A stretch of DNA of 64,000 nucleotides from Thalia democratica (lineage: Eukaryota). The first letter of the stretch is position 1, and every line of letters begins with the position of its first letter. Shown here piece after piece: positions 12,267-38,900 of the stretch. The position numbers and the translations under genes are program-made. The notes under the pieces are model-generated. The model saw only the letters and a program-made list of their open reading frames with translations, had not been told where the DNA came from and ran no database searches. The stretch covers positions 32,984,001-33,048,000 of the forward strand of contig OZ241830.1 of assembly GCA_965202585.1 (NCBI GenBank), given 5' to 3'.

Positions 12267-13996
12267 TTCTTTGTAGATTTGTTAACTGTATAAAAAATCA
12301 ATACTAATAAATTAAAAATATACAAACTTTATAAGTTTTATAAGTTTTCAGTACGAAATAGTTTCTTAACTACTTTTTTTTCTCACAAAACTAAAATTAA
12401 TGCACTTTTAACTTAAATTCAATGCCTTTTAAATACTTTTTTAATGTTTTACTTAATAAAACCAACATGTATTGTCTTTGTTAATGTTTAAAAGCTCTAA
12501 ATAACAAAACTGTTACATGTTCGGTTTAAATGTTTTAAAGTTTTGTTATATGAAAGAAACTTATGATCACAAATAAACTGGTTAATAATTTAAATTAAAA
12601 ATATTTGTTTTCAACGTTTAAACGAAAATATTTGCTTAATTACATGAAAGACAAATAAAAAATCTCCTACTTAAATAAATAGTGTATAATAGATAACAAT
12701 ACTTTTGTTAAAACTTCAAAGTATTCAACAGGTGTTAGAATATTATTTTGATAAATGCGAATTTATATAAAGGTTTGTTTATTTTGCACTTTCTATACAT
12801 TATCTTTTGTTGGTAAAACAAAAAAACTCATTGTTGTCTGAATTAAAAAAAACCTGCTATGTATTATTTGGACTTCGCTAACACTTTTGTTAAGGTTATA
12901 CTTAAGCAATTTTTGTGTTTTTTTGCTCAATGTACTAATTTGATAAGTTTTTTTTTGTTGACTTTTTTAAAATTATTAGTATTAAAATTCTTCTTAAAAT
13001 ATATTTCTTTATAACTTTAGCATTTAAAACTAGCGACCTAAACAAAATTAACTTCATAAAACTAAGTGTTTTTGTTTTATAAGCTTTAGTTTAGTAAGTC
13101 TGTAAGATTTTGACAAACTAAGCAAACAAACTTGGTGAAACAATTTCGGCGCTCTCAAAATTAAACATATGGCCAAATTTATTTTACTTAAATACATAGT
13201 TAAACAAAACTACCTTTAATTTAAATCGATGAACTTGAAGTTAATAGTTTGACTGTTGTCGAAATATTAAGCATTTTAAATAAAATTAATAATAATTTTG
13301 AAAGTTATAACATTTTCAAAACTAACAATTATTGAATGGTAATTGTCGTTGTTCGAAGTTCTATAATAAAGTACCAAAATTTTCTTTAAAAAAAAAATAA
13401 TTAAATCTTAACGTATTTGAAAAAATATTTCTTAAAAGTTTTAAGTATTTATTCGCAAAGTAATTTCATAATCATACGGCTGAATAAAGTTATATATCAA
13501 ACGAATTTTCATTTTAAAAGCTTATTTATTTAATTCTAACGCTTACTATTTTGTTTTTGTTTCCTTTTAATTTAAATAAAGAAACATTTCATAGTTGATT
13601 AACAATTTTTTTTTCTACTTGTTTTTAAATCAAATATCAAAACAATTCTATGAACTACAAATTATGAAAAAAAAAACATAAAAACATGCATCTTAGTTTT
13701 ATATATTTTAATTTATGTAACCTAAAATCTCATAAGCAAAACTAACATGCTGTTATTATCATGTTGTAAACGTTAATTGGTGAACTTATAACACAGTTTC
13801 ATACTTAAGTACCAAAGCTATTAATCTGAAAAAAAGTGGAGTGCAGGACTATCGGTGGGTTAAGGAGGCAAGCATGAAATGTTATCAAGGCACGTTTGAA
13901 AAATGTTTTGTAAAATTCGACTTATAATTATTTTTAAGTTTAAATTATATGTCTTATTTAGATACTAAATTACTAATTAAGTCGTTTTATACACAG

Positions 13997-16290
13997 AGTG
14001 CAGCAGCATTTCAACTGTAGCTTTCTCAACAGCGTATTTTGATATATAAACACCAGTCATCCCGATCACTTACAATACCTAGATTACTAATGTTTGCAAT
14101 GATGGGTATTTCCCAAGTACAAAAAGTCGGCGGAGTGCAGAACTTTTGGTGAGTTAACGAGGCAAACATCAAATGTTACCAAGGCACGTTTGAAAACTAT
14201 TTTGTAAAATTCAATTTATAAGTATATTAATTTAACTAAATACCTAATTTAAATATTAAATTACTAATTAAGTCGTTTTACATACAGAGTGCAGCATTAT
14301 TTCAACTTAGCTTTCGCAACAGCGTATTTTGATATAATAACACCCGTCAGTCCGTTCACTAGCAATATCTAGGTTGATTGTGATTGTTATTATGGTTATT
14401 CCCCATGTGCGAATAAGTAGGCGTAGTGCAGGACTTTCGGTAGGGTTAACGAGGCAAGTATCAAGTATTACCAAAACATGTTTTAAATAATTTTGTAAAA
14501 TCTAATTATAAATATTTATAATTTTAAACTAAATGCCTTATTTAAATATATGATTAATAATTAAGTCGTTTTAAACACAGAGTGCAGTAGCATTTCAACT
14601 GTAGCTTTTGTATTAGCGTTTTTAGATATAGTAACACCCGTTAGCTCGATCACTGACAATACCTAGGTTGATTGTGATTTCGATTATGGGTATTACCCAA
14701 ATACAAATAAGTCGGCGGAGTGCAGGACTTTCGGTGGTTTAACGAGGCAAGCATGAAATGTTACCAAGGCACGTTTGAAAAATATTTTGTAAAATTCGAT
14801 TTATATATTTTCATCAATTTAAACTACATACCTTATTTAAATATTCAACAAAAAACATCGGCGAAAGTCTGCAGAACAGAAGTTTGGACTTTCGTTTGCT
14901 GTGAAACAAGCTCAAATTTAACAAAAGGGTTGATTATGCCAATTCGATCATCAGACCACAAGTTTCGGTAGACTGAGACCGACAAGATTATTTAAGTATT
15001 AAATTAAATTACTAGTTAAGTCGTTTTACACACAGAGTGCAGAAGCATTTCAACTGCAGCTTTCGCAACAGCGTATTTTGATATAGTAACACCCGTCAGT
15101 CCGATCACTATACCTAGATTTAATATTTTTGCAATGATGGGTATTCCCCATGTACGAATAAGTAGGCGGGGTGCAAGAATTTTGGTGGGTTAACGAGGCA
15201 AACATCAAATGTTACCACGGCACGTTTGAAAAGTATTTTGTAAAATTTGATTTATAGGTATATAAGTTTAAACTTTACGCCTTATTTAAATATTTAATTA
15301 CTAATTAAGTTGTATTTTACACATGGTGCACAGCATTTCAATTGTAGTTTTCGCAAAAAAGTATTTTGATATAAGAACTCCTGTCAGCCCGATCACTAGC
15401 AATATCTAGGTTGATTGTGGTTGTGATTATGGGTATTCCCCAAGTATAAATAATTCGGCGTAGTGCAGGACTTTCGGTGGGTTAACGATGCAAGCATCAA
15501 ATGTTATCAAAGCACGTTTGAAAAATATTTTGTAAAATTAGATTTACATATATTTATTAATTTAAACTATATGTTTTATTCAAATATTAAAATACTAATT
15601 CAGTCGTTTTACACACAGCGTGCAGCCGTATTTCAACTGTAGCTTTCGCAACAGCGTATTTTGATATAAGAACATCCGTCAGCCTAATCACTTACAATAC
15701 CTATGTTGATTGTGATTGTGATTATGGGTATTCACCCAGTACGAATAAGACAGCGGAGTGCAGGCTTTCGGTGGGTTAACGAGGTAAGCATCAAATGTTA
15801 CCAAGGCACGTTTGAAAACTATTTTGTAAAATTTTGATTTATAGGTACATAAATTTAAACTTTATACCTTATTTAAATATTAGATTCTTAATTAAGGGGT
15901 TTTACACAAATAGTGCAGCATTATTTCAACTGTAGCTTTGGCATTAGCGTATTTTGATATAAGAACACACGTCAGCCTGATTACTTACAATACTCAGATT
16001 ACATATGTTTGTAATGATGGGTATTCCCCAAGTACGAATAAGTCAGCGTAGTGCAGGACTTTCGGTGGGTTAACGAGGCAAGCATAAAATGTTACTATGG
16101 CACGTTTGAAAAATATTTTGTAAAATTTGATTTATAAATATTTATAAATTTAATCTAAATGCCTTATTTAAATAATCAACTTACTAATTAAGTCGTTTTA
16201 CACACAGAGTGCAGCATTTCAACTGTAGCTTTCTCAACAGCGTGTTTTGATATAATAACTACCGTCAGCCTGATTACTTACAATACCTAG
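13997..16290 (+). pseudogene. Degenerate multi-sushi (CCP/SCR) exon-intron array; each unit is one ~188-nt phase 1-1 exon plus a ~105-nt intron
   Basis: Consensus translation: (E)CSSISTVAFATAYFDIxTPVSPITYNTQITYVCNDGYSPSTNKSAEC-[frameshift]-DFRWVNEASIKCYQ(G). This shows the four-Cys, C-x-x-G-Y, W pattern of CCP modules. Units have a CAG acceptor and a G|GCACGT donor-like end. Every copy carries stops and/or frameshifts. Confidence 0.8.
14846..14987. mobile_element. 142-bp insertion into the array spacer with a ~13-bp target-site duplication
   Basis: Flanked by TTATTTAAATATT (14833-14845) and TTATTTAAGTATT (14988-15000). The other units have this motif only once. Confidence 0.6.
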
Positions 16291-17446
16291 ATTAAATATT
16301 TTTTCGAAGAAACGTGTTTTTTCAGTAGTACACGCAAAAAAAGTGGAAACTAAGGTTGATTTGAATCTATTGTAATGCAATGATATAATTGTTGTCACGT
16401 GTACAAAAATTCAGACTAACAGATACACTTACAAAGTATTTTACACGTACTTTGTTTAAATATAGTTTTTATCTTCAAAAGCATTGTTCACGAAACTGCG
16501 TATATGTTTCAAGTTTGGGATATTTACAATATAAAAGTTTGATTATGAATAACAAAGTTATGATTGTTTGAAAAATAATTAAATTAGAAAAAGTATTGCT
16601 CTGTTTAACTTAATAATTCAAAATTAGTTAGTGATCAGCTCAATTAGAAGTATAAAAAAAAGTTAATACTAACTTTATTGACCGAAATTTGATCTACAAG
16701 TTTAAATGATAGTTATTCAAAACTGTTTCAAACTAGTTTGATATGAATTAAAAATATACTTTCAAATAAAACTTCTATTTTAACCATATCATTTTTAAAT
16801 TTAACTATCATATTTTTAAAGTAAATAAGGTTTTACTAGTAAAATAAATGACGAGGCTTTGATTAAGTGTAAGTAATTAATTTAATAATGAGAATTATAA
16901 AAAGCAAGCTGTTAATTACAGTTTGTTTTTATTTTAATTTTAAAAATTTTTGCTGTACTCTGTTTTCAATACATATTTTTTTTTAAGAGTCAACTCTGGA
17001 TTTTTTAATCTTTATATTTTGTTTAGCGTAACTACTTTTATAAAAATCGGTTTATATATATATTATTTTGTTGAAACACATTAAACTTAAATGACTATTG
17101 ACCTTATGAAGAGCTCAAATTTAGCTATTAAAATTTTATTTATATTACTGTTAGAATTTTTTTATCTACAAATAGTGGTTTTAAGTCATGGTAAAAAATA
17201 AATGTTATCAATTTTATCTAATTTTTCTAAAAGTATTAATTGAGTTAATTTGCTACTGACAAACAATTCAACTTCAAAAACTAATTAAAGCTTTTGTTTA
17301 AATTAAAAAAAAAGCGGTTTTAACCAAATACTTTTCATTTAAATAACTCTTTTCCTATAAAATATAAAGTATTTTTAAACTAAAAAATTATTTAAAATAT
17401 TATGTTGATTCTTTTCCAAGAATGTAATTTAATTTTTTTTTTAATA

Positions 17447-18227
17447 CAGTAGACTACCGCTTAAGTACGCACTTTTTTTAGTACGCACCCCGCCTTAAGT
17501 ACGCTCTTAATCCAGAAATACAAAAAAAATTCTAAATTTTCTCTATATTTTTTTCTAAATTCTTTATATATTTAGATCAAATTTAAATAAACAAATAACC
17601 TGAATTATTGCTTTCACAGATTTTTTGCGAGAATCAATTCTCATTTCAGCATCGAAAATCCTAAGAAGTTCTCTCATATTATCACGGGAGACATATGTTG
17701 GCTTTGGTGGTGCAACTTTTTTTTAAATTTTAATGTGACATAATAAAAAACTAGTAAACAACAAAAAAGTTAAAAAAACCTACAAGTACAACATAGTTAA
17801 GTCATAATTTAATTTTAATGTACACACATTGATGTTTTGAAAATGTTTGGTAAACACAATGTAGTTTGGTACCTCCCTCTAACAATACGAAATATGGAAA
17901 AAATTGCTTAATTTTTTTTTTTATATCATTGACTGACATTGACTTTCTATATTAAATGTATGTATTAATTATGTAGAAACTTTTAATAGAAAAAAATATC
18001 ATTTTAAAATCTATTAAAAAATTTTGCAGATTAGAATTATGTATTTAATGTTATTCAAAATAAAAAGACTAGTTTATTTGGCTTAACTATTTAGTGGCTA
18101 GTTGTAAGAAAGAAAACAAACAACTAAATTTCATATTATACTATGTCGTCAAAAAGTACGCACTACCCGTGCTAAGTACGCACTTTTTGGTCGGGTTCAA
18201 TTTGCGTACTTAAGCGGTAGTCTACTG
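17447..18227. mobile_element. Tc1/mariner-pogo-type MITE, 781 bp
   Basis: Perfect 25-bp TIRs (CAGTAGACTACCGCTTAAGTACGCA and its complement at 18203-18227), a TA duplication on both sides, and subterminal AGTACGCAC repeats at both ends. Confidence 0.92.
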
Positions 18228-21200: not shown

Positions 21201-23833
21201 TTATTAGTAAAAATGGTTCAACAAATGAATAAAAAATATAATATAATTTTTTTACGCATGCACTTTTACTTTTAGATGTAAAGTAATGAGCTAGACTGCT
21301 GGAGAGTTTTCAAAAGTGCATTATTGATTTTTTGAAAAGGTGTTTTGTTTACCTTAACTTTGTTTATATTTTAGTAAAAAAACAATTTATTAAATCTTTA
21401 AAAAAATAAGTACATTTGTAGGCAACTCGTGTAAAACAGAAATATTTTTGCATTATGTGTTACAAAAGTTTTTACTTCTCCAAGAAAATAAAAACTTTAA
21501 AACTTTTTATTATGTTTTGATTTGAAACATATTATTTACCGGTTTTTATTTTTATTTTATAAAATTAGCTAAGTTCAAGGTAAAAATACAGAAAGAAAAA
21601 TGTTTAACTTCAAGTTTACATAACTCCTTCACATATACATGTTAATCAAACATAACAGAATTTATCAGAACTGTTTTTAAATTTTATTAAAATAAAACTT
21701 TAGCTTTTAAAGAATCTAACATTTTGCATTTTGCATTTAACATGTTTGTTAAGAATAAAATAAAGCATTTTATCGTAAATATCTAGTTACATTTATTTTA
21801 TTGTGAACATTTCTTTTTGTTTAATTTTTGTACAACATTTTTTATAATTGTGTTTGTTTTTTGTAAAGTTTTTAATGTTCGGCATTTTAAATTAAACCAA
21901 ATTTAGCTAAGAATGTGTTTTATTTGTTTGTATACTTTTTTTTAACAAAATTTGAGAAATATAATAGTTAAAGTATTTATATTAGTTTGTATTAGATGTG
22001 TTTACTTATATTTAAAAAAGTATTTCTCAAAAATAAAAACATGATTTATGTAAAAGTAAACGTTTTAGAAGTTTGCGTTTTGGTTATAGATTTAACTTTA
22101 AATTAGTAAATATGTTTAAATAGTATAATGCTGTTTTATAACCTTTAGTTAAGCTATTTACTAAAAATTTGCTTAAAACAATTAAAGAAGTTGTTTGTAT
22201 TATTTTTTTACTCGACAAAAAATCTAAAAATAGCTAAGTAAAATGATTAAATAAAAAGCGAATAAATCAAACATGAATTAATAAATTAATAGTATTGTTA
22301 GTTTTATGAGTCAAACAAATACTGTAAAATATAAAGTGACTCATCTATAAAAGTCAAGGTCAGTGATACTCATCCAATTAGAGAGTTAAGAACTCAAAAT
22401 TAAAGGAAATTAGTAACGCCTATTTTGGTTATTGCAACACAAAAAGAAATACCTAACTTTTCTTGTTTGAGTTCAAAACTAGAAAAAACCAAATGTAAAA
22501 AAATACTTTTACACATACTTCGCTATGAATATTTAGTAAAACCATGCAAAACAATTGTATTTTCTTCAAACTAAGTTAATTAATGCCAACAATCGGTGAA
22601 ATTAATGCCACACTTCACGGAATGTTGCAATTCGTATTTCTCCTCTTAATCTTTCCACTTTCTTCTAAATACTAGTCAGTCTAGTGACAGCTGCTGCATT
22701 TTACGTCATTATCAGTCAGTTTTTATCGCTAGCTTGCTTCATTGTTATAAGTACGAAAAATTAGACAGCAATTTATTAGTTTTGCAGTTTATTTAGGTGT
22801 AAATGTAGTAAAAAAAAAACAAATTCATCTTTTAGTATGCTTTTTGTATGTTCATAGAAGTTTTTATTTGTAAACATTGTTTGTTTTATAGATTTCTATT
22901 ATAAACAAAGACGTGGTTTAGTTTGTTAATGTTTCTTTTTTAGTTTAAGAGGTATGAATGTTTAAAATCGTTTTTAAACATTTCAAGTGATTTTTGAGAA
23001 AAAAAGATTCTGTGTTTTGCTTTGAGAAAAAGAAACTTTTTTAAAACATATTTTTTTTGGATATTTTGCTTAAGAATATAAAAATGAATTAGTACAAAAT
23101 ATTAATTATAACTAATACCTTAACACTTTTCTTTACATTAAACATACCTGGTTTTGTTTATAAAGTTTAGTTTAATAATTAGTTGAATTTCATTTATTGA
23201 AAAAAAAATTTAAATCAAAGAGTAGAAGTTGAATGCTTTTACAATATATAGATGCAATTAAAAACTATTTGAATTATTGTATCAAGATTTACATTAAATA
23301 ATAATCGTTTCTTTTTCAGCTTTGGGTTTTTTAGCCCTTTTTGTTATCCGAATAACTTCGGTAACTACTTGTTAGTAATTTGCACATTCAAATAGTTCCA
23401 AGATTCTTGTATTTTATTTTGTTCCAGCACTGATGAAATTATTATAAGGAAACTCAAGTAAAAAACATTCAATTAAAGACAAAGATTACAAGGTAAGGAG
23501 TCATAAAATTTTCGTATAAAAACTAAGTAGATATAGAGTCATAATGTAGATGTAGAGTAACTATTGTAATTGCTTTTGTTACATTTAAAATGTCTGTAAA
23601 ATTTTCTGATCTAATTAATTTATTTTAGAATATATATCTTGATTTTATACATGATACAACTTATAAATTTCGTTTTTAAAATGTAGCTCCCTTTTTAACT
23701 GTAACAGCTATTTGCGTATTATTAACTCATCATTTAAAGTAAAACTCAATTTAAGGCTTAGCTGTTTTACCTTTTACTTAATAATGTTAGTTTACAATTG
23801 TTATATCACAGGAAAGAAATCAAAGAAGTAAAT

Positions 23834-23927
23834 ATGAGGTTTGCCTCATTAGGAAGCATTTTCCTTGCTCTACTATTGTTGTTAAGCTGCCACACTACTA
23901 ATGGACAAGATTCTACTGAGTCTAAAG
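23834..23927 (+). CDS. ITGB4: Integrin signal-peptide exon ([31 protein letters not shown])
   Basis: Hydrophobic core and a phase-1 donor that matches the PSI exon. An acceptor at 23811 implies an upstream non-coding exon or a trans-splice site. Confidence 0.85.
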
Positions 23928-26900
23928 GTTAAAAAGAATACTCCTTTAATGTATTTAAATCTGTGATTGGATATGTTTCAAAATTTGTTAGAAATTAGTT
24001 CCAAATAACCAAAATGATTGATTAATATATTGTTGATTTGATTTCCTTTAGATCTTTAATTAAACTCAACAGTTTGACTAGTTTTTGAAACACTAGTAAA
24101 TGAAAACCAAAACAAATATTATTGATGAAGTTTATAATTTTGAATTATTTTAAATCTTAGTTTAATTCAACCGTGAAATTTTTGTATTTATTTACTAAAA
24201 TAATCAAAATGTATGGAGAAAGACAAATATTTGACATATGCTCGTTAGAAAAGTTTACCTTAAGCAAAGTTTAACTTGTTTTGACTTAAATTTGCTTTGA
24301 TTGTAACATTTTTTGGTTTTGTATCTTTCTGAAAAAAAACTTGCTTTTAAAAAACGGCATTGTTCAACCTTTCACATTAAAGGTTAAAGCATGATTTATA
24401 AGTAGTTAAAAGTTGAAAAACTATACAACAAAACATATTTTTATTTTATGCTAAAGTGTTAATATAAAACGACAAAGTAAATAAAGTGAACAATTTTTTA
24501 AAAAGACTTTGTGAATGTCTTATGTGTAACAGAGATTAAAAATAGAATAAATTGTAAAAATTAATTTTATTTTTTATTCAAATCCTTGCAAAAAATACTA
24601 TTAAATGTAAAGTTTAAACAGCTGACTAAATATTCGCTAAAGATAAGCAAATGACAAAATGTATCAGTGTAAATAAATCTTTTTTGATGTATAAATGGTA
24701 AGAAGTAAAATTATTTTGCGGTTGTTATTTTTAAGACAGCTAAATTAATATTTTTTGTTTGTTTTAAAACATACAGAGTGCATAAAACCAAAATAATCCT
24801 TAAAATGGAAACTTTGCATTGAATAGATATTGTCACGTCTTAATTTAGTTAAACTGGTATGATATATATTTTTTCAAGGTTATATTTTTAGAAACTGTTT
24901 TTTAAATTTATCGAGAAACTTTTAATACTTATTCATTCAAGAGTACGTATTTTTAAACAAATCAGAATTAAAACAATTTTGACTTAAAACTGTAAAAAAT
25001 ACTAAACTTCATTAATACGAAACTCAAAAGAAAAGTTGTTTGTTTCATAGTGAAAACAGCTAGTGTTCAAAATATATTTTCCAGATATTTCTGTACTACG
25101 TGCTGCTTTTATTTGCTATTATTACGTCACAATCTAAACAATCATTTTGTTTCCCCATAGTAAGAATTTTACACAGCTAATCAATTATGCTTTTTCTAAA
25201 GGGTTTTGTACATTTTTTGATTTCTTGTTCAGTTTTTAAGGCACAAAATATTTTATTCATTGCGAAGAAAGCTTTTATGATAAAAATTTGCAATTGTTTA
25301 AATACAAATAATAAATGTTGTGAGTCAAACTATAAAAAAAACGTTCCTGTATTTGTTTTATCACAGTTTTATATTTAAATGATCAAAAGCGAGGGTTTTT
25401 TTTTGACAAACATAATTTAATAATATGTTGCTTAGTAAAACATTTATAATAGGTTACTGTAATTTCTTAACTAAAATCCTAGTAGTCACTATTTTAAGGA
25501 CAAGTTGAGCTTTTAAGATGTACTTAATCTATGGTGTCTTGTGTTTTTGTTTACTATTCCTTCAAAATAAAGTAAATGTTTATCACTTAGATACTTATGC
25601 TGGATAAATACTCAAGTATTTTTAAACAGATAAAGACAAAACAAACTTAAAATTGAAATTTTTCATGTTACCGCAAAACCTTTTTAGTATTTCAAACACT
25701 ATTAATTTTTTTTAATAATTAAAGAATATCTGCAAGAAATATATTATTTAAGACAATATAGTAAAATAGATAAAAACTGTAAAGAAATAACAAAAATCAA
25801 CTAAATAATTTTTCATTTCAGACCTGTGCAAAGCATCAGCTGGATGGCAATACTCCGCCTCCTCATCCAGGTATTTCTCCTCATCATCAGGAGGAGGTTT
25901 CTCCTACTCCATGTCGGAGTTAAGTGTTATTTGCGGGGATTCCCTCGTTCCGCAAGAGTGCATCAGAGCGCATCCGCAGTGCCAGTGGTGCGCGCAAGAA
26001 GTAAATTGATTTTATTAATTTCAAACTATTAAACTTTGTTGACCAAATATTTAGAGTGATTTTTATTTTAGGTTAATGAAAACTTTTACATAAGTTTACC
26101 AAGTATTTATAAAACTTTTCAACTATTTTGATGCACAAAAATTACTTTAAAATCATTTTTTAAGTCACATTTTTAACTCATAGTTTTATTTTTCCTTCTT
26201 ATTTTGGTATTTATCATGGTTCATTCTTAACTTTTATATTAATTAGTAACATTTTACAAACAAAACTTATCAATCATTTTGTAACAGTCTTAGTTTATTA
26301 TTATTCACGTTTGATAACTTAAAATATTATTACTTTTCATCAGTTGTTTCTTCAAAAGATCTTTGATAAAACTAAATTTTTTAATAATCTTTATAAACCT
26401 CAACATAGAGAAAAACTTGAATTTTTAGTTTAAAATCCTTTAACTTTTGTGAAAGCTTGCTTTTAAGTAAATACGTTTAAAGTTGTGGATATGTTTTAAA
26501 ATAGATAAAATTTCACAAAGTTAATAGAGTTTTTATTTCAAACTGTTTTTACTACTTCAAATGAAGCAGTTTAACTAAATTGTAATCAAAACTTAAAACA
26601 CTATTTTAAATAATTAAAATATTTTTTTTTAATACAAATTAGTTCATGATGCTTATATCTAGCTTAAACTTAAATTATATATATTTAATGAAGATTTATT
26701 GTCCAGAATTGTATTCTTTAACTGTAATCCAAAGTAAAACGGAAAAACCATAAAACACATAATTTATACTCTATACGGCTTTAGTATAATATCGAAATTC
26801 CTATATCATGTTCAAATATCCCAAAGTCATGAAGCGTAAGAAGAACTATCAATATGTTTAAACTTAGAATTTGTAGATTTTTTTTTGATAAAGTGAGAGT

Positions 26901-29900
26901 AGCAAAGTGGCAAAAAAACGTTTACTAAGTAAAACAGGAGTGATAGGTTGCTTATCTTTTAAAAGATAGTTTGAAAACTTATGAAAATGCTAAACAATGT
27001 TTTCTGAAAAAGCTGTTTTAAAAAAAGTTTTTATTCAGCTAAAGAAAAAAATCTGCATTTTTTCAAACTGAATAAAACATACACAATAGCTTTGTATATA
27101 AAAAATATTAGTTTGTAAATACAATATTTATGTTTTAAAATATCGGTAGAAAATAATTTATTTTAAATATCAAAAAAAACCTTACAATCTACGTTTATAA
27201 AATAAAAGTCAACTATAAGTGACCTTTTTTAAAAATTTTTGTTAAAAACGATTTTTGTTACAGCTATCTATATACATGTTTTTGTTTTGACTGGAATAAA
27301 ATACGACTTCTGTGTAATTTTCTTATTAATAGTAGAATTTAAGACACTTATTAAGCTTCATCAACACTAAACAGGGATTTAAAAAGAAAAGATGCAATGT
27401 GGAGAGCGTGCTGCAAGAACAAAACTGCACTCAGTTGGAAGTTGTCAAGTCGGAAGCCAAAGGGGAATATTATAAAGGCGAATACCAGCGATTTAACGCA
27501 AAATCTTCTCAGGTGGGTGAAATTTTGGAGATTTAAATTTTTCCACAAAGAGCAAATTATAAGCTCAGTTACAATAAATTATATGGTGTTAAGTAACAAA
27601 TAGATGAAGTAATAGCTGTCCTTTTTATTAAAAAAGCAAATTTTTCGAAATCTTTAAAGTTTATTTTACTTAAAACAGACAAATGCTTTACTTTAATTTG
27701 TAAGAGTTTTTAAAGCACTTGTGTTTAATTCAAAAATAAATTAAGTTTAGAAAATAGATATCTTAATTAAGCTTATAATTAAAATAACTAATGCATGCTT
27801 CTGTTAAAAGCAGATAATTTTTAAATTCGATCATCTTTTACAAAAAAAAAAGTTATTAATAAGAACACATGTTTCCAAAATTTTTTTTTCAGCTTCACAC
27901 AAGTGACTATAAAAATAAATTTCATTATAGTTTGAACTTCAAAACCTACTTTAAAACAAAATATTACTAACATAATTGCTGTTCAGTTTTTATTCGCTCA
28001 AGCATAACGAAATTTACAGGTTATTAAAGGTTAAAACGCTTTGGAAATAGCAATAATTTAACATGAACTAGATAAAACACTTAGGCGTAATTTGTTTAAA
28101 TTTGCAGCTTTATTTAGATTAAAACATAAACATAAACAAACTAAGTTGCAATCTAGGTAAATTAATAGTTGTCAGAAGATACGCTTAACTAATTAATTAG
28201 TTATAAAGTATTCTTACACGTGGAAATAATGTATACAAATATAATCAACATTCAATTATGACGTATAACGATATCAGATAGTTTATCTTTGGAAAATGAC
28301 GCAAGCTTGCAAGCTCTTGAGATAGACAAAGTTGTTCTCTCTTTCGCACAGATAAAATTTACTTGTGATCGTTTTTGCTCGATTCTTTTTATATGAAACC
28401 TAATCTAACAATAATTAGTCATTTTCCAGGCTTAAATCAATACAAAATGGTTGTGTAAAGTAGATAAACTTTACCTAAAATAACTTACTCTAACTTTATT
28501 AATACTTTTTTAGTTTGAGTTGACACTCAAATTTAAATTTCAAGGTAAAAATTTAAATAAACAAAACAAGTAAAAAAAAAACTTCAAGCTGTTTTTTAAC
28601 AAAAAATTAAAAAAAACATCAAAAACGTTATTATATAACAGGTTTATACTACAAAAAAACTAAATCCTTAAAAGTCTGAATGTAAAATTAAGATAACCTA
28701 GTTTGTGGTAACTTTGTTTAAAAAATATTTCTTGATCTAAATAATATAAAAGATGAATTACTACTTCTACAAACATTGAAAGAGTTTAATTTTTGTTTTT
28801 AGTGTTATAGGCGTAAAACACAATTTTTTAAACAAGTTAGAAATACTTGCCAGACAAGCGACAATTAAATCTTGATTGAAAAATATAACTATACGATAAT
28901 TAATCATAGCTTTACTATTTAACTGTTTCATCTTTATCTTCAACAACTCTTTTTAATAGATATATTTTTGATATTTTTTGTTGTTATGTAAAAGTTTTTA
29001 GTTTTATAATTAACAAAATTTATAAATTGGTTTTGACATGTATTTGACTATTCTAAATACTCTTTTATATCAATGATAGTTATAGTTATACAAATGCTCA
29101 CATGAACTTATTGTTTTAAATACAACATTAAAAATTTATGCAAGCTATCATAAATTTTAGAATAATAATTTACCTTTATGGTTATTAAAGCTGTTAAAAC
29201 TTTTATCTATTAGTAAAACATTACGAAACTTGTAGCACTTGTAGAACTTTTAAAAACTAAAATAATTACCATCGGTTAAATTTTAAAAAAATTAAAAAAA
29301 ATCTTATTAGCTTCTAAATCAGTTGTTATACAGGTAAATGTACGCATCGGTGACACAGTACCATTTGAATTCAAAGTTAAAGAACCAGAAGTCTACCCTG
29401 TCGATTTGTACTACCTTATGGACCTTTCGTTCAGTATGAAGGACGATTTGAAAAATGTTAACAAACTCGCAATTAAAATTGGTTTGTTTTGTTTGAACTA
29501 TAGAAAAATTAACAAAGTTTTTTATAACTTTTGCACTATGAGTTTTATAAAAGTTGAAATATATTAAATCAAACAAACAAAAACAAAAAAATGTTGTCTA
29601 AAAATAACTCAGAATTTGTTTTGATTATTTAATAAAGTTTTACATAACGTTTATAAAATTTTTAGTAATTGTTAAAACAAAAACTTTTCATTATAATATC
29701 AAAGATTTTTACTAATACTTCTTCAGTTGAAACACTTAAAATGCTGACATCTGGAGCCGACGGAACCGTCAGATTGGGATTCGGAACTTTTGTTGATAAA
29801 GTTCAAAGCCCCATGACACAAATGACACCTTACAAGTTCGTTGCATTATTAACACTATCAATTTAAAAACAAAATCAAGTTATTTTGTTGAAATTAAAAA

Positions 29901-32900
29901 ATTACATCAAATTATTTTCTAAGTTGTTTATATTAGTCGAATTTAGAATTTTTATCAAAAAATTAGTTTTACTGATCTGCTGAAAATCAAACAGACCTAA
30001 ATATGACAATTACGGTGACTTAGGACTAAAATTTGGTTTACAGAGCTTAACGCTAAAAAAAAAACTATCGTTTGAAACAATATGTAAGGTTTTCAACAAA
30101 ACTCCAATTTCTTCATTTACAAATATTTTTCAGACTGCAGCACCCATACTTTAACGACACGGAGCCACCCTTCTTATACGAGAACAGGATAGGGATGACA
30201 GACAACATCACCCTGTTTCAGGAAGTCGTGGGTGACGTGAAAGTTTCAGGTAACCTGGATCCCCCAGAAGCCGCACTGGATGCCATGTTGCAGGTATGAT
30301 TGATGTTTGGTTTAAAATTGCTTTTATTTGCTACGATATGATAAACACAAAAATAAATAATATTGTTCTTAAAATACGTTTATTTTTTGAGTTGGTTAGC
30401 TTAATATTGTAAATTTATTCTAGCGTAAAATAAATTTAGTAGTAAAACTAAATTATATCAGGTGGCGAAATGCAACGATCTGATTGGTTGGAAGGGTGAA
30501 GCTTTGAGGTTGATGCTGGTTGCCACGGAATCAGCTTATCACTACGGGGGTGACGGTATGGACAAGATGGCAGGGTTCACCAGGAGCAACGACGGTGAAT
30601 GCCACACCGACAAGGAAAACGGAAAGTTAGTTTCTTATAAGGGGAATTAAATATAATTTTGATTTGTTTATAACTTTCATACTTTTAATTTACTTGAATT
30701 TTTATAATTGTTTACTTCGATTTATTGGCTAGATAAAAGTTACTATGTTTAACGACATTTAAATCATCTTTGATTTTTGAACAGTGAAGTTTATTTCAAG
30801 TTTGATAAATAAGCAAACAAACTAAACCTTATATTTGTGTCTTTTATGAGCATTAAAGTTGAAATTGTGCCAACTTTCGATTTTTGAATGGTTTTAGGAT
30901 TAATTAAATTTATCAAAAAAGTTATTTTATTAGTTATTTTAGTGCTTTTAAGACAATATAATTAATCAAAACTTTAATACAAAAAATATCTTTAAAACTA
31001 TAACTTTTAGAAAAAAATATAAAAATGTTTTAAGGTATTAACTTTACAGATATATGGACGATGGAACAATGGACTACCCAACAATCACACAAGTAGTAGA
31101 TGCAGTAGAAGAAAGCTCCATTACACCGGTATTTGCTATCGGAAGAACTTACGAAAACATGTACCAGGTTATAAGAACTATTTTTTACTTATATTGTAAC
31201 AATATTACTTTTCACAGCTCTTAATACGATTATGAGCACCATGTAAGATTTTTAATGGTGGAGTTGTTTTATACTCATAGAATTTTTGTTAATTTTTTTT
31301 TAGTCATACTACTGTACAAACCGAACGACTAAGATAATACATTGTCCATCAATTGTTTATGACGCAGTAATTAAAACTTAATATTGCTAAAGTTTAGGTT
31401 CGTTATTTTTTTTATATGTGTTGATTCTATTTTTTGAAAACTAGTATTAGAAGTTTTTAATCACCAACGTTGTGGAATTATTCTACAAAAAATTGTATTA
31501 TTATTTAATCAAATTCATAAAAAATCAAAGTTTTTTTAGTTGTTGTATAACATCTTTTATTTCACTTAAGCAATTTTTGAATTTATTGAAAGTTATATGA
31601 TTTATTTTTGTTGTCTAAAATCTATTTGAATTTACAAAAAAAAAAGTTTTCAACTAGTAGTAATTTGTTATTTGATTGCCATAATTTAAATATGTGCTTT
31701 GAGTTATAAAAAACTACATACTTTCACAGTTAGTTTACATTATGAGGCGAACATTTAAAGCTTAACTGTCAAATAAGACAAGTTAAAAACACTTTTCTTC
31801 ATACATAAACAAATCTAACGCGAGTAAACAAAACAACTTCTAAATCAATTTTATGAATGAAAATAAGCAAGCTCTGACTAATTTTGACATTTGTAAACAA
31901 CAACTACAAAAAACAATTTAAAATCTCTGTCTCAAGTATCTAAGTATGTATCAACAAACTTAATTCAGTGCTTACGAATATCACAAACATTTTGAAAAGA
32001 TTATAAAAGTTTGGTTTAAACCCTTACAACTACTTTTATCTTAATAGTTGATGTTTTAAACATTATATGCTACTTAAGTTTGCTAAGCTAGTTTGGTGTT
32101 TATTCATTATTAACAATTTAGGTAATTAATCAACAAATGTTCAAAATTTTGAATACGTTATTTTTGTAACAGCACGTCTCGAAGAATGTATTCAAAGGTT
32201 CAACATTCGGAGTATTGAAAAACGATTCAAGTAACATAGTAGACCTCGTTGAAAAGGCGTATCTAGATATTTCTGGTTCGTTTTGAATAAAACTCTTCAA
32301 CTTTTATTTGTATACTAACGTATTTGTTACAATTAAATAACACGTTATATTTTTTCAACAAAGTACCATAATACAAATACTTAAAGAACTAAATTTTCAA
32401 AATAAATTGTTTTTTTTAGTAGTGAGATAAGAACTTAACTATATCCTACTAATAAATTACATAATTTATGAGCAAAAGTAATTAACAAAAACGTTATTGT
32501 AATACTTGCAATAACAGGTCAGCAGGATCTTAGGACAGCCAATCCGAACGAAGATAACTTGTGTGTGTGGTATGATGTACAGTTACCTTACAAAAACGTA
32601 AAAGATACATTGGAAGTTTCAAACGCTGTTGTCACAAAACTCAAGTCCGGTGACGAGGTAAGCGTGTTGTGATGACGCAGAAGTGTTAGAGGTCTAACTA
32701 ATCAGTTTAAACAATAGAGTTTTCATTGTTACTTAATTAGATGTGCTAAGCTTAGTAATCAGATGGCACATCAATCCTCTTTATAAAACAGTATAGGTGA
32801 TTTGAAAACATAGTTTAAAATTTTACGTTTTTAATATAAAAACTAGGTGAAATACGATATGAACATCAATGCGAACTTGGAAGCTTGCGATAAATCAGCT

Positions 32901-35900
32901 CTGAACTGTTCAGGAGGCGTCATCAGCCTGAAAACTAGGAAGTACGAGGAAACGTTGCCTGTTGAAACCACCATACTAGCTGCATTCGGCTGCTCTGAAT
33001 TCGTTGAAGTAATAAATTAAATATTTGGTCACTTTAAATTAATATTGTTGTTTCACTTTACATTGTTGTTTTTGAAAACCAAGAATAACTATAAGTTAAT
33101 TGTACATTAATTTCGAGGTAAAAACGTTGATATATTAACATAAGTGTTGTTAAATTTTGTATAATATTTAAAATACCGGAAAAAAAAGATAATAGTTTTG
33201 CTATGCTTATGTATTTAAAACCAAAGCTTTATTAAACAACTTTTAAATTTACACAATATATCTATACATTTTTTAACATTCATTGAAATAATGTTTTTTA
33301 TAGGAAAACAGTGCAAAATGTAGTGGCAGAGGTAACTTTTCCTGTGGTATCTGTTTCTGCCCTACTGGCTGGCTCGGCATTGCATGCGAGAAAAGCACGA
33401 TTCCTAAAGGGTGCATTGGTCATGACGGAAAAACATGTTCAGGTTAGTTTTTGTAGATTCATAGTTTTCTCACTAGTTAGTTTTAACTTGATAGTCATTT
33501 TGCCATAAAACATTATTTAAAAAACCTTTAAAGAGGTATTTAATTCTGTGTTAAAATTGCGGGTTATTTTTTTCAAGCTTTGTAAGTTACGCTCGATTTA
33601 ATTCATTAAAGTTCGGTTTAGTGTATAAACTTAGTGGTGTGAAACTTTAGTCTAGTTTTATACTTATTAAAACTAATTTCAATAGGATAATGTGCTGAAA
33701 AAAACTTTTTTTAAGTTGTACATATGCTTAAAAACCATTATATTTCAAAAAAAGTTTTCAAAGTTTGTTTGGTAAACAAAGTGAGTTTAATACTTAATTT
33801 AACGTTTAGTGTGACAAAATTTTATTTAGAGCGAAGTAAATGTTTAGAAATAACATACTTTTTAAAAGGTGCACTAATATAACTCTTGTTTTAAAAGATG
33901 TTTAACTATTTTGAAAAAAATATGAAAATTTGAAACAGACACGAATCAGTGAATGTATTATATATCAGATTTAAAGCTTTGACATAAAAAACATTTAATT
34001 TTAGAGCGAGGCGATTGTTCGCCGATAACAAACGAGTGTCAGTGTTTTCCCGGGTACAACTATAATAAGGAGCGGATATACGGGGACTTCTGTGAGTGCG
34101 ATGAGTGCCCGAAAAACGCGGGAGTCGTCTGTAGTGGACACGGAACGTAAGTTAAACTTTCTTATTTATTTTAAGAGTAGTAATTACAATTTTTTTAAGT
34201 ATACTTTTGTTTACTTTAAAGAGTTTGTTTTCAGACTTTAAAATACTGTTAAACCAAAAGATAAAAAATAAATTTTTCTAAATGGTTTGAGAGTTGCTAA
34301 CAAAATATACTACTTATCTGTACTTTTATGCAAACAGTGGTTTTCCTAAATTCATTTAAGATTTTTTATATATTGTCTAGAACTTTTCAGTTTTAAATAA
34401 CATTAAAAATTATTTAGTTACAGTAAAAATACAATTTACACTCAAAATACCATCAACGCGACAAATTTATGCTTTACCAGTTTTATACAAAAGCTTCCAC
34501 ATTCAAACTGCAACAGTTTATTAAAATTTCACCTTTTTACAATTCAAATGAAATAGGCCCACCAAGGTGAGAGAGTGCGGGTGCGAGTGCTTGTGCGACG
34601 AGGGGTGGGGCAGGATCGACTGCAGCTGCAGCATGTCGCGGCTCACGTGCACCTCTCCCGCGGGGGCCATCTGCAGCGGGAAGGGCGTCTGCAAGTGCGG
34701 GACCTGCAAGTGCGAGACCGGGTACACCGGGCCCTACTGTACCGAGTGCATAGAAGGGCCTAACAATGTTAGTTGTTGCAAATGTTGTGAATATGTTTGG
34801 TGTTTTGTTCGTTATGTTTGAAGATATTGATAAAATTTGAATTGTGGCTGAACTTTTTTTTTCTTTCGTTTTGACTTTTTACAAGTTAATTTGAAAATAA
34901 AGGTGTTTGATTATATGCATAATAAATGAAAATAACATTTAAAAACTTTATCTGCAACTTTTTAATGAATTGTAGATTTATGCAAATGAAAATTTTACAA
35001 CATTTGTTTATTTTAATAACAAAAAAAAACTTTAACTGGCATCTAAAATATTTTAAGTTAAGTTACAAACATGTATAAACTGGAATAGAGATCTTTAAAC
35101 CAAGATTAGACATAAAAAAATGTGTTTGTAGATAACTTTTACAAAAAGTGTATCTAATCCATATATTCATACTCAAACGACAATATAACACAAACTAAAA
35201 AATATAAAATGATACAAAAGTGTTACAAAACCTAAGTTTTCTTTTACTTTAACCCAACTATGCTTTACACAGGAATGTCCAAGCTGCGACAAGTTTGAAA
35301 ACTGTGTCAAGTGCACCATGCACGGTACCGGACCTCTGCGAGAAAGCTGCGCGGAATCGTGCCCTCATCCCATACAAGCAGCAGATGTTTACTCGCTCGA
35401 CGACGGTTGGTTTGCAGAATAATTACTCATGCGTGCGATAATCTATTTGAACTTGAAAGTTTACTTTGAACAAAAATGTGAACAAAAAGTTTTTTAACAA
35501 CTAGCTAAACCATTTTTTTTTATTTCAATTGAGTTACCCAACAACGCATAAAACTTTAAACCAATATATAAACATATATTTTTGTAAACTAATATTTTGA
35601 CATTGAACTTTGTAGAAGTACTTGACCGTGTAAAAAATAATTAACTTTTTTTACGCTTTAGCATTCAATGAAAATAAAATATCACCCGGAAATAAGGCAC
35701 ACGTTAACGAAGTGTAAAATTTAAATTATCATCAAATTGCAGAGGAAGCAGATAAAAGGGGGATGACGCTGTGCAGTAAAACTGACCCGCTTGACGACTG
35801 TGCTTTTTACTACGAGTTTGCCACCATCGGAGATGACGAGTACACCATCATTGCTGAGAAAAATAAACGTTTGTATCATATGTACTTTATTTCAGTTTAG

Positions 35901-38900
35901 ATTTGTTTAGCTTTGTAAATAATCGCAAAAACTAAAATAATTTTTGATAAAAGTGTTTTGACTTTAAAAATATTTTATAAACAGTAAAAAATAAAAAATT
36001 GTTTGTAAAGTTTTACGTGAAAAAGAATTCTTTTTGAAATGAAACTTTTGTATTGTTTCGTTGTTTTTAAGACACGAAAAACTTAATAACAGATTAATTA
36101 AACTTTTGTTTAAATTGTAAACTTCAACGTTTTTACATTGATTGAAACAAAACCAATTTTTTTCTTATAAAAGCAATAAAATAAAGTTAACTCTAAAGTG
36201 CTTTTCTATTTAAACTAAAAATCTATTAAATAGTAATGTAAACAAAACAAGCCATTTTGAGACTTTGGAAATTTAAAGTTAAAATTTATTCAGATTAATT
36301 ATTCTACTCTCTACTAAACATTCTTTTTTTTCGTCAAAATTTCGTTTAAGCAATGTAGTTGTCAATAAACCAAGTAATTTACAAACAAAACATTCCCTTC
36401 AGGTTGCAGGAAATCGTACTCCTTGTTGATAATCCTGTGGTGCGTCCTTCTCTTCCTCCTCATCGGGTTGATCCTCCTCTGCTGCTGGAGGTGCTGCGTG
36501 TACGTCATAGACAAGGAAAAGGAGAAAACGTTCTTGAAGGAGAACATTCCATTACCGACACTCATACCCCTCGTTCCTACTATTGGCGCAGGTTTTATGT
36601 TTATTTATACAAATTGTAAATAAAAGCTTAACTAGTTGAAAATTTCTTTTAAATTTTTTCGGACATATTTAAAAAACTTTTTTCTTTTTTTTTTATGAAC
36701 AACCACATTATTTTATTTACTACGTAAATAGTAATGTTTGAAATATTGAATAGTAATTTTTGAAAAAGTCTTTTTAAATGTTATTTGTAAATATCTAGGA
36801 AGCGTGATTGAGTTCATCAAAGCCAAGTACCTGATGAGAAAGAGCGACAAGGTGGCAATCATCCCTGTAAGAAGAAGTTTTACTCGCGGGGAAACCCGGC
36901 TCAACTACCGCACTTACAAAGGTTTGGCGGGAAATTGTAATAACTTATTAATTTTTCAATATGTAAGCTAAAATCTAACTTTTACTAATAAGTAACTTAT
37001 TACACTAGTTGTTTTGAATATTACTGGTTCATTTATCTTTAAATGTTTTATTGTTAACGATGTTTCAGTTGTTGTTGAGCTGATTATACTTTTGTTAACC
37101 TTTGCACTAGATATACATTTTTTTAATTTTACACTTATCAACATCGTTGAACATTAGTGCATTGGTATTGTTTTAACTTTGTATTAATTAATTTCATCAC
37201 AGGTTCTGCTGAAGACAACGATTTTGAAGTTTTGAGTCAAGGTGAGGAAGGAACCATGATCAGAAAACGAATCATGTCAAGAGAAAGGTTATTTGCTTTA
37301 AATGAAAGTATAAACTGCTTTCTTGTTTAATGCTGTATAGTTTTTAAATTCTAACTGTTAGACTAACAGTACGGAAGATAAGAATACGATAAAACCGAAA
37401 AAAACTATTAGTTGATTCTATTATCATGATGCAATGAAATTTTATCACCGTCTTAAAAAGGAGTGAAAAGATCTAACAAGGTTCTTATATTAAAAATTAA
37501 TCATAACTAAAATTTATCAGTGCAAGCCAACAAGAGTCAGAACCTCTGTTGGGCGCCGGCCAAGTTCAAGAAGAGAGAATAAAGAAGGTTGAGACTGGAG
37601 TTACTCAGAGCGGAGTGCATTTCGAGGTCTTGGACGAAAACGACCAGAATCGTCCGTTAGTCCAAGACGATGAAGCTTTCCAGCAAGAGGAAATCAGCAG
37701 TTACGGAATGGGAGAAGTTGTGTGAGTGTTTGTTTTAAGAAAAAGTTATACTTATAACTATGTTTATAATCTAAGTTCAGGTTTACTTTAATTTAGCCTT
37801 TCTTTAAACGTTTACGGTAGTTTATATAGTTTGTGAAAAAATCTATTGTATTATTTTAATTTAAAATTTTATTTTAGTAATGTTTTAACTAATGCATTAA
37901 AAAAACTGACATCCTACATTATTAATCAATAATCTTGATTAATTTTTATCAGTTAACATTTTTCTGTAGTTTCAAAGACGGTGAGGAATATGCAAATATC
38001 GAAATTCCCCTAATATACGATTTCGAAGGTAAGGAGGACGCCTTTTGGGTGGAACTTTACAATCAGGAGAGAGGAACAGCACTTGGACTGAAAAGAACTA
38101 AAGTTGTTGTTATCAAGGATGAAGGTTAGCATGTTTTATTGTTATTATTACAATTTTAATAGTAATAACTGTAAATAATTTAATCTTTTTGACTTTAATA
38201 TTTTTTAAACTTATGGTTTTATTTACTTTTAACTAAAGAAAATTGTATCTTAAGTATTCCTGTTGCAACCTAAACATAACAGAAATTAAGCAGTTGTATT
38301 CTACAATTGTTTCGATACCATAAAACTTAAAACCAAACAGACCACGGAGTAATCGGATTCCCGAAACCCAGCTACGTGTTCAAAGAGAATGACGGGATCG
38401 CTAAAATCCCCATCCACAGAACTGTTGGCATGGACGGACCTGTTAGCGTTGCCTGGGTTACTAGGGACATGTCGGCGTTGGCAGGAACCCATTTCGTCGG
38501 AGGAAGGGGCGTGTGCAATTTCGCTGATGGACAGGTTTGATTTAAGTTAACGATTATTTTAGCTTTGATTTTGTTATATAATTTAATGAAATACTTTACT
38601 ATAGTTATACTTATGTATTTTAATTATAAAGTAAACTTATATTCAACATGTTTTGTATAAAAGTTTATTAATGTTTGTTTTGAACTTAAATGATGTATAA
38701 CAATCAACGAAAATGAAACATTTAATAATAACACAAAAACGTTTTTTTACAAATTTTTAAGTTGTTTACAGCTTAAGGCTGGGTTTTAAAGAAGTTAATG
38801 TTTTAATATTTATTTTTGTAAGCAAATCTTATATTGTTATGATTTATTTAATGAAAAAAATTACAGTGTTACGTAAGGATAAATTAAATTTTGGAAAATG

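Follow-up and report, generated by a model that had tools for sequence, protein, structure and literature searches.

A tandem array of decayed sushi/CCP-like exon-plus-intron units between a dipeptidase gene and an integrin beta gene in Thalia democratica

We analysed a 64,000-nt stretch of the genome of Thalia democratica (contig OZ241830.1, positions 32,984,001 to 33,048,000), which we call the window. At positions 13841-16335 of the window, 8.0 units of about 293 bp follow one another head to tail as an array. Every unit consists of a relic splice acceptor, a sushi/CCP-like exon of 184-188 nt, and a relic splice donor. We think it probable that the array is non-coding and expanded from one exon-plus-intron unit of the sushi/CCP type, which was probably dead already. 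It sits in a unique spacer, with a dipeptidase gene on one side and an integrin beta gene on the other. We describe it as an ordinary decaying tandem duplication, in which a gene fragment has turned into a tandem repeat. A first-pass annotation, made from the sequence alone, had described an array of ~293-bp units with an acceptor, a CCP exon, and a donor. Tandem Repeats Finder and our alignment of the units both find this array to be real.

Tandem Repeats Finder reports two blocks that each have a period of 293-294 and 80% matches: 3.4 copies at 13838-14844 and 4.5 copies at 15003-16303. The gap between the blocks is a mobile-element insert (see below) and is no part of the repeat. In the unit alignment, eight exons start at 13997, 14288, 14581, 15036, 15327, 15619, 15912, and 16208, and the last of these is truncated. 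The array is composed of a leading partial unit (P), seven full units, and the truncated unit (A4t). The units are of two types, A and B, which contrast in a block around the second Cys. They diverge from each other by 11-18%, and the alignment shows no conserved sub-block. A higher-order repeat of the form A-B-B is not supported, as units at the same position in such a repeat are no closer to each other than other pairs are. The other haplotype of this region is contig C130 (the haplotig), whose flanks are 94-98% identical to those of the window.

All of the units are on the plus strand. P (13841-13996) begins at the third Cys codon, and so has only the final third of the exon, followed by the intron; the haplotig's first partial unit matches it with 93% identity. 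A1 (13997-14287) has a dead exon at 13997-14183, followed by its intron; its lesions are a TAA and a TAG stop, the 1-nt deletion that is common in the array, and another 1-nt deletion, and its donor reads CAAG|GCACGT. B1 (14288-14580; dead exon 14288-14475, plus intron) has three stops, has lost the fourth Cys (TAT), and reads ACATGT at the donor site. It is 92% identical to h1, a unit of the haplotig. B2 (14581-14844) has a dead exon at 14581-14768 and the first part of an intron, the remainder of which follows the insert and extends to 15035. A2 (15036-15326) has a dead exon at 15036-15219 and an intron. B3 (15327-15618; dead exon 15327-15511, plus intron) has lost its acceptor. B4 (15619-15911; dead exon 15619-15805, plus intron) has TAT at codon 28 and an additional 1-nt deletion. 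A3 (15912-16207; dead exon 15912-16099, plus intron) has CAG at codon 28, and its acceptor is gone. Finally, A4t (16208-16335) holds the first two thirds of the exon, with degeneracy rising along it; nhmmer places it at 16202-16327, on profile positions 1-129.

As the reference for the lesions, we used an intact exon from contig C10 (discussed below) and the less decayed relatives. Whichever of the three plus-strand frames is read, the exon of every unit is interrupted by stops (1-7 stops per frame per unit). Codon 28 is CAG on C10. In the window it is TAG in six of the eight units, TAT in B4, and CAG in A3. The CAG of A3 comes with a double change, CT>TC, that adjoins the otherwise conserved ACC, so it looks secondary. 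Seven of the eight units also share a 1-nt deletion (GGT-GG|GTT) that lies five codons past the third Cys. The exception is B1: both it and its haplotig allele have GGTAGGGTT at the site of the frame break, with the same length as in the intact relatives. Because B1 nests with B3 in the tree (87/88), the simpler reading is that B1 once had the frame break and later gained an A.

The splice sites are damaged as well. The site that is homologous to the donor reads GCACGT in seven of the eight units (G|GCACGT in six) and ACATGT at 14476. The change from GT to GC is thus present in seven of the eight, and the haplotig's first partial unit retains GTACGT where P in the window has GC. The acceptor (..ACAG|) is retained in six of the eight units and is destroyed at 15327 (ATGG) and 15912 (AAAT). 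Each unit also has private damage, in the form of added stops and frameshifts; overall, two acceptors, one donor, and one fourth Cys are gone. Two ways of splicing around the damage were ruled out. Excising the TAG as a 49-nt mini-intron (GTATTT...CCTAG) deletes the middle of the domain and leads the frame into a TAA, and with an alternative donor, a GT 4 nt downstream, stops persist in all frames. The first-pass annotation had correctly read codon 28 (CAG in the copy at 15912, TAT in the copy at 15619, and TAG in most) and the GC-type donor, with G|GCACGT in most copies. It had also put a frame break right after the third Cys in all copies. The 1-nt deletion does exist, but it lies five codons farther on, and not all of the units have it.

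We then compared the exons with the introns. Pairs drawn from the seven full units are on average 82.5% identical in their exons and 84.5% in their introns. By codon position, the identity is 81/79/83% for positions 1/2/3, so there is no excess at the third position. This pattern supports neutral evolution, with coding constraint apparently absent since the units separated. An expressed multi-CCP gene would have open exons and a coding pattern of substitutions, and the array has neither.

Are the units really derived from a CCP module? We scanned the open pieces of the units against Pfam. Sushi is the best family for the open pieces of B4 (52 amino acids, E = 0.045, 14.6 bits) and A3 (43 amino acids, E = 0.0095, 16.8 bits), and both scores are below the curated cut-off for Sushi (PF00084) of 20.7 bits. 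The first-pass annotation had proposed a search of the repaired consensus with Sushi; for the open pieces, its choice of family stands, with scores that do not reach the cut-off. When we searched the animal's own genome at the protein level, intact relatives turned up at 31.70-31.73 Mb of C10. They are present in at least 16 tandem copies, with 46% protein identity and no stops. The exon on C10 is 195 nt long, is in phase 1 at both ends, and has the acceptor ..ACAG|AGTGCAG and a normal GT donor. It matches Sushi with 20.0 bits, just below 20.7, and the partner exon that alternates with it scores 28.4 bits. The intact members of the unit family thus belong to a large CCP gene on C10 that is built from a two-exon cassette. 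(This region, stretches L039-L041, holds the nearest live relatives; the cassette combines a module that lacks Trp with a standard Sushi module.)

At the DNA level, the window units and the C10 exons align colinearly, with 72-73% identity (E about 1e-9). The acceptor and the phase are the same in both, and the donor site is homologous. In both, one module occupies one symmetrical phase-1 exon of about 190 nt (195 nt on C10 and 184-188 nt in the window). A frameshift-aware alignment to the C10 exon places the first three Cys and the C-x-x-G-Y motif in most units. The fourth Cys (KCYQ), according to the DNA alignment, is in the frame on the far side of the 1-nt deletion. The window units therefore have the four-Cys spacing of a CCP module, with C..GY after the second Cys. 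They do not have a Trp between the third and the fourth Cys, where intact and less decayed relatives read G-x-V-D/N. The W that the first-pass annotation gave as part of W...KCYQ is an artefact of joining two frames, and the family is without this Trp. Because Sushi is the best match, because intact relatives exist on C10, and because the DNA alignment to them is colinear, we conclude that the unit descends from a divergent CCP module, of a subtype without the Trp.

We also examined the history of the array. In a maximum-likelihood tree from the exon alignment, the nine units from the window and the haplotig form one clade, with support of 100/99 and a stem of 0.093 changes per site. Inside the clade the tree is star-like, with tips of 0.06-0.11. 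Given this single clade and its star-like interior, either one unit gave rise to the whole array or the array was completely homogenised at some time; in both cases it decayed afterwards. The closest relative of the window units, according to DNA searches, is an array on C7 (40.566 Mb). That array is decayed, and five of its six units have the TAG. Common descent of the TAG in the window and C7 is likely. As the C7 array is decayed and is on another chromosome, the TAG that it shares with the window makes it probable that the founder was dead from the outset.

The units also exchanged sequence. A variant in the 5' part of the unit (GCAGCATTTC or GCATTATTTC) combines with the A/B block in all four possible ways (four-gamete mosaics), so there has been exchange between units. 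These mosaics, together with the alleles of eight and three units described below, show that the exchange took place after the units had died. The proposal in the first-pass annotation that amplification or homogenisation continued after inactivation is supported, as regards amplification, by the common lesions, the single 100/99 clade, the neutral pattern, and the exchange after death.

Arrays of the same family are found on C7, at 31.28 Mb and 22.34 Mb of C6, and at 31.3-31.96 Mb of C4, and all of them are broken. These related arrays hold 1-8 units. The array at 31.28 Mb of C6 is decayed and is built from the same unit family with a period of about 300 bp. In the tree, this array, the C7 array, and the window clade form a polytomy. 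Compared to the C6 array, the window array is a separate clade that has its own 1-nt deletion and GC donor; compared to the other fossil CCP arrays in the genome, it has exact border repeats and alleles of eight and three units. We looked for intact CCP exons in 10-kb stretches that surround four of these arrays (C7, C6 at 31.28 Mb, and two on C4), and found none. The first-pass annotation had suggested a genome-wide search for an intact parent gene and other arrays. Intact relatives (on C10) and decayed arrays were found, and no match outside the locus and the haplotig exceeds 76% DNA identity.

Two other groups of relatives were seen. First, the family has four dead single units that are dispersed: one on C385, a pair in opposite orientation on C1149, and one at 72.0 Mb of C4. 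(They are at L046 3162-3374, L047 3075-3289, L048 3152-3365 on the minus strand, and L049 3156-3355 on the minus strand.) All four have one frameshift and one stop in common, and three have the same two stops. An extra piece, corresponding to profile positions 84-132, follows each dispersed unit, except that it was not found in the stretch of L047. The dispersed units look like one dead unit that was spread by duplication or by a mobile carrier. Second, the C4 arrays at 31.78 Mb (L018) and 31.33 Mb (L019) contain orthologous pairs of units (100/98 and 100/99), so a two-unit cassette was duplicated as a block. The region of C4 at 31.3-31.96 Mb has several further matches, and intact Sushi exons are close by at 31.01-31.06 Mb.

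The length of the array varies between alleles. The haplotig's array has 3.0 units: P, a B1-like unit (92%), a unit with TAT at codon 28, and a truncated end unit. We checked both alleles in public sequencing runs, with depth taken from assembled contigs. In runs X1 and X2, which are from one sample, contigs with the long array have about half the depth of the flanks, and unit P shows the letters of both alleles. The animal behind X1 and X2 is therefore heterozygous. Run X3, which has another organism label, shows only the letters of the short allele, and its joints carry the haplotig's letters. Variation in copy number, which the first-pass annotation had thought worth a look, is therefore real: alleles with eight units and with three units coexist. 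More broadly, between window positions 3455 and 29688 and C130 the haplotypes differ by 2-13%, which is very high heterozygosity. C130 also has about 3 kb (around 412-3492 of L017) that is absent from the window at 23550.

Next, we consider where the array sits. To its left, on the minus strand, are exons of a membrane dipeptidase (Peptidase_M19; 7140-11679; Pfam E = 4.9e-23 and 7e-14), with the 5' end towards the array. Open frames at 10751-10957 and 11542-11679 may be more N-terminal parts of the dipeptidase. To its right, on the plus strand, is the start of an integrin beta gene (23798-36500). Its first exon is probably the signal-peptide-like open frame at 23798-23932; VWA/MIDAS exons follow at 29.4-30.3 kb, and EGF repeats at 34.6 kb. 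With the gene ends placed by open frames, the two head-to-head gene starts are about 12 kb apart, and the array is an orphan in the spacer that separates them. A DNA profile of the exon found no further family member in the window, and a scan of all six frames for the CCP pattern found no intact CCP module in the window. The homology of the flanks to the unit is not beyond that of shuffled controls. Apart from C130, the flanks are unique in the 801-Mb assembly. Carriage of the array by a mobile element was not supported, as the flanks occur only here and in the haplotig.

The borders of the array are marked by a 12-nt direct repeat, AAAAAAAGTGGA, on the plus strand. The left copy (13829-13840) and the right copy (16336-16347) are exactly at the array's borders, and these are the only two occurrences in the 64-kb window (0.11 expected by chance). 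The haplotig has the same bracket, one A shorter. Between the two copies, after subtracting the mobile element and its target duplication, there are 2339 nt, which corresponds to 8.0 units. At the phase of the borders, the internal units keep the ancestral exon sequence AATAAGTCGGCGGA, and therefore the two border 12-mers are copies of each other. We read the 12-nt bracket as a putative target duplication from the entry of a fragment with a whole number of units. We found no clear border repeats around the C7 and C6 arrays.

Putting these pieces together, we propose the following order of events. The TAG would predate the window array, while the 1-nt deletion and the donor change would have occurred on the stem that leads to it. 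The founder would have arrived as a fragment with a whole number of units, rather than being the remnant of a gene that died in place. Its entry would have made the 12-nt target duplication, and could have occurred by a retroelement-type insertion, by reintegration of a circle, or by templated repair of a break. The array would then have grown and shrunk by unequal crossing-over, and it would have no function.

Several observations weigh against parts of this proposal. First, the 12-nt bracket resembles the unit's own AATAAGTCGGCGGA, so reading it as a target duplication is insecure, and the empty site (which would read ...CTGAAAAAAAGTGGAAACTAAGG...) was found in none of the runs. Second, the unit at 14288 lacks the frame break, so that lesion may postdate the first duplications. 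Third, C7 falls in a polytomy with the window clade instead of beside it as its sister, so the TAG could be a recurrent C>T change. Fourth, the units are 11-18% diverged, and hence nothing indicates that they were homogenised recently. Finally, the array may be transcribed, may produce small RNAs, or may have a regulatory role.

A broader idea, which we hold only tentatively, is that dead CCP exon-plus-intron units form a dispersing proto-satellite family, in which pieces made of whole units are copied to new chromosomes, with target duplications of about 12 nt, and then expand locally. The copying would use the machinery of retroelements, circular DNA, or templated repair of breaks. If so, the window array would be an example caught before its borders were lost. 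Should the border repeat prove to be a genuine target duplication, the locus bears on how tandem repeats seed new chromosomal sites.

We also considered other explanations for the array. One is that a multi-CCP gene between the two neighbours died in place and was mostly deleted, and that the remainder was homogenised by unequal crossing-over after the first lesions. The genome has more than 2300 sushi candidates, the related arrays on C7, C6, and C4 are decayed as well, and homogenisation would likewise yield a single clade. Nevertheless, decay in place seems unlikely to us. The window has no other CCP relic, the flanks lack homology to the unit, and an exact 12-nt repeat surrounds a whole number of units. 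Also, with gene starts about 12 kb apart, there is scant room for the former gene.

It is quite improbable that the array is a functional non-coding element, either as a source of small RNAs or as a spacer or regulatory array for its two divergent neighbours. Alleles of three and eight units coexist, the units have diverged by 11-18% with no conserved sub-block, and a mobile-element insertion was tolerated. The array does sit between two gene 5' ends, which would suit such a role.

The first-pass annotation had offered another alternative: a silent reservoir of donors for gene conversion into a live, variable CCP receptor. The pseudo-V arrays of chickens are gene-conversion donors of this kind. 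Like them, the window array is a cluster of dead, diverged copies of one immune-type module, arranged in tandem, and the genome is rich in CCP genes. But the feature that defines a donor array, a live and highly similar recipient, usually nearby on the same DNA, is absent from this locus. Outside the locus and the haplotig, nothing exceeds 76% identity to either unit type, and the best match (74-76%) is itself dead. Among intact exons, the nearest (46% identical as protein and 72-73% as DNA) are on another contig, and our scan of the window found no CCP gene nearby on the same DNA. As nothing live in the assembly is similar enough, we view a donor reservoir as very improbable. The array is not a variable-receptor system and has no bearing on self/non-self recognition.

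Lastly, a live gene with unusual splicing, in which the GT four bases past the GC gives a symmetrical 192-nt exon in one frame, is scarcely credible: most units do have CAC|GTTTGA 4 nt past the GC, which would offset the 1-nt deletion, but there are 1-7 stops in every plus-strand frame of every unit, the fourth Cys is missing from the frame of the 192-nt exon, the array has lost two acceptors and one donor, and the substitution pattern is neutral.

Is the array a satellite, as the first-pass annotation called it? It does consist of head-to-tail, non-coding monomers that vary in copy number and exchange sequence with each other. It is not a long, high-copy array with hundreds to thousands of monomers. 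Genome-wide DNA searches gave 31-38 matches, including the window's own units. "Satellite" therefore overstates what is one locus of 2.5 kb with eight copies. As sources of satellites, a 2025 review names transposable elements, other tandem repeats, and 5S rDNA, and the words "exon" and "pseudogene" are absent from its text (PMC12692304). An origin of a tandem repeat from an exon plus an intron therefore appears to be uncommon in the literature.

The array can be compared to several known systems. Kringle IV-2 of human LPA and the long homologous repeats of CR1 are exon-plus-intron arrays that vary in copy number in live genes. As in the window, what is repeated head to tail is an entire exon together with its intron, and the copy number varies by unequal crossing-over. 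(CR1 itself even consists of CCP modules.) In contrast to the units of LPA and CR1, which are open and lie in expressed genes, those in the window are broken, evolve neutrally, and are orphaned between unrelated genes. The D4Z4 macrosatellite is derived from a retrogene. D4Z4 and the satellites from 5S rDNA resemble the window array in that the monomer descends from part of a gene. The difference is that the window array has eight copies in 2.5 kb at one locus, and that its source is a protein-coding exon with its intron.

What the window offers is a clean, datable case of an exon from a modular protein, along with its intron, that has survived as a tandem repeat after the loss of its gene. 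Comparing common to private lesions reveals the order of events, and the copy number is still changing, as the two alleles illustrate. There is also a warning for annotation: in this genome, which is rich in CCP genes, regular arrays of sushi-like matches may be fossils.

Finally, we return to the insert in the intron of B2 (14845-14988), which is a fragment of a short and very abundant mobile element. In assembled contigs of public runs, the depth at the insert is about 6e5, versus about 200 beside it. The genome has more than 2000 candidate copies, and those that we scored are 94-97% identical over bases 1-137 (14845-14981). Other copies in the genome extend past 14981, so the copy in the window is truncated. 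An intron motif, TTATTTAA[A/G]TAT, is present on both sides of the insert, with the second, near-identical copy at 14989-15000; the match is near-perfect over 12-13 nt. This duplicated motif looks like a target duplication, as in a retroelement-type insertion. Because of the more than 2000 candidates, the high depth, and the duplicated flank, we conclude that the fragment of a young mobile element landed in the B2 intron. A second stretch of very deep contigs lies at 17343-17500.

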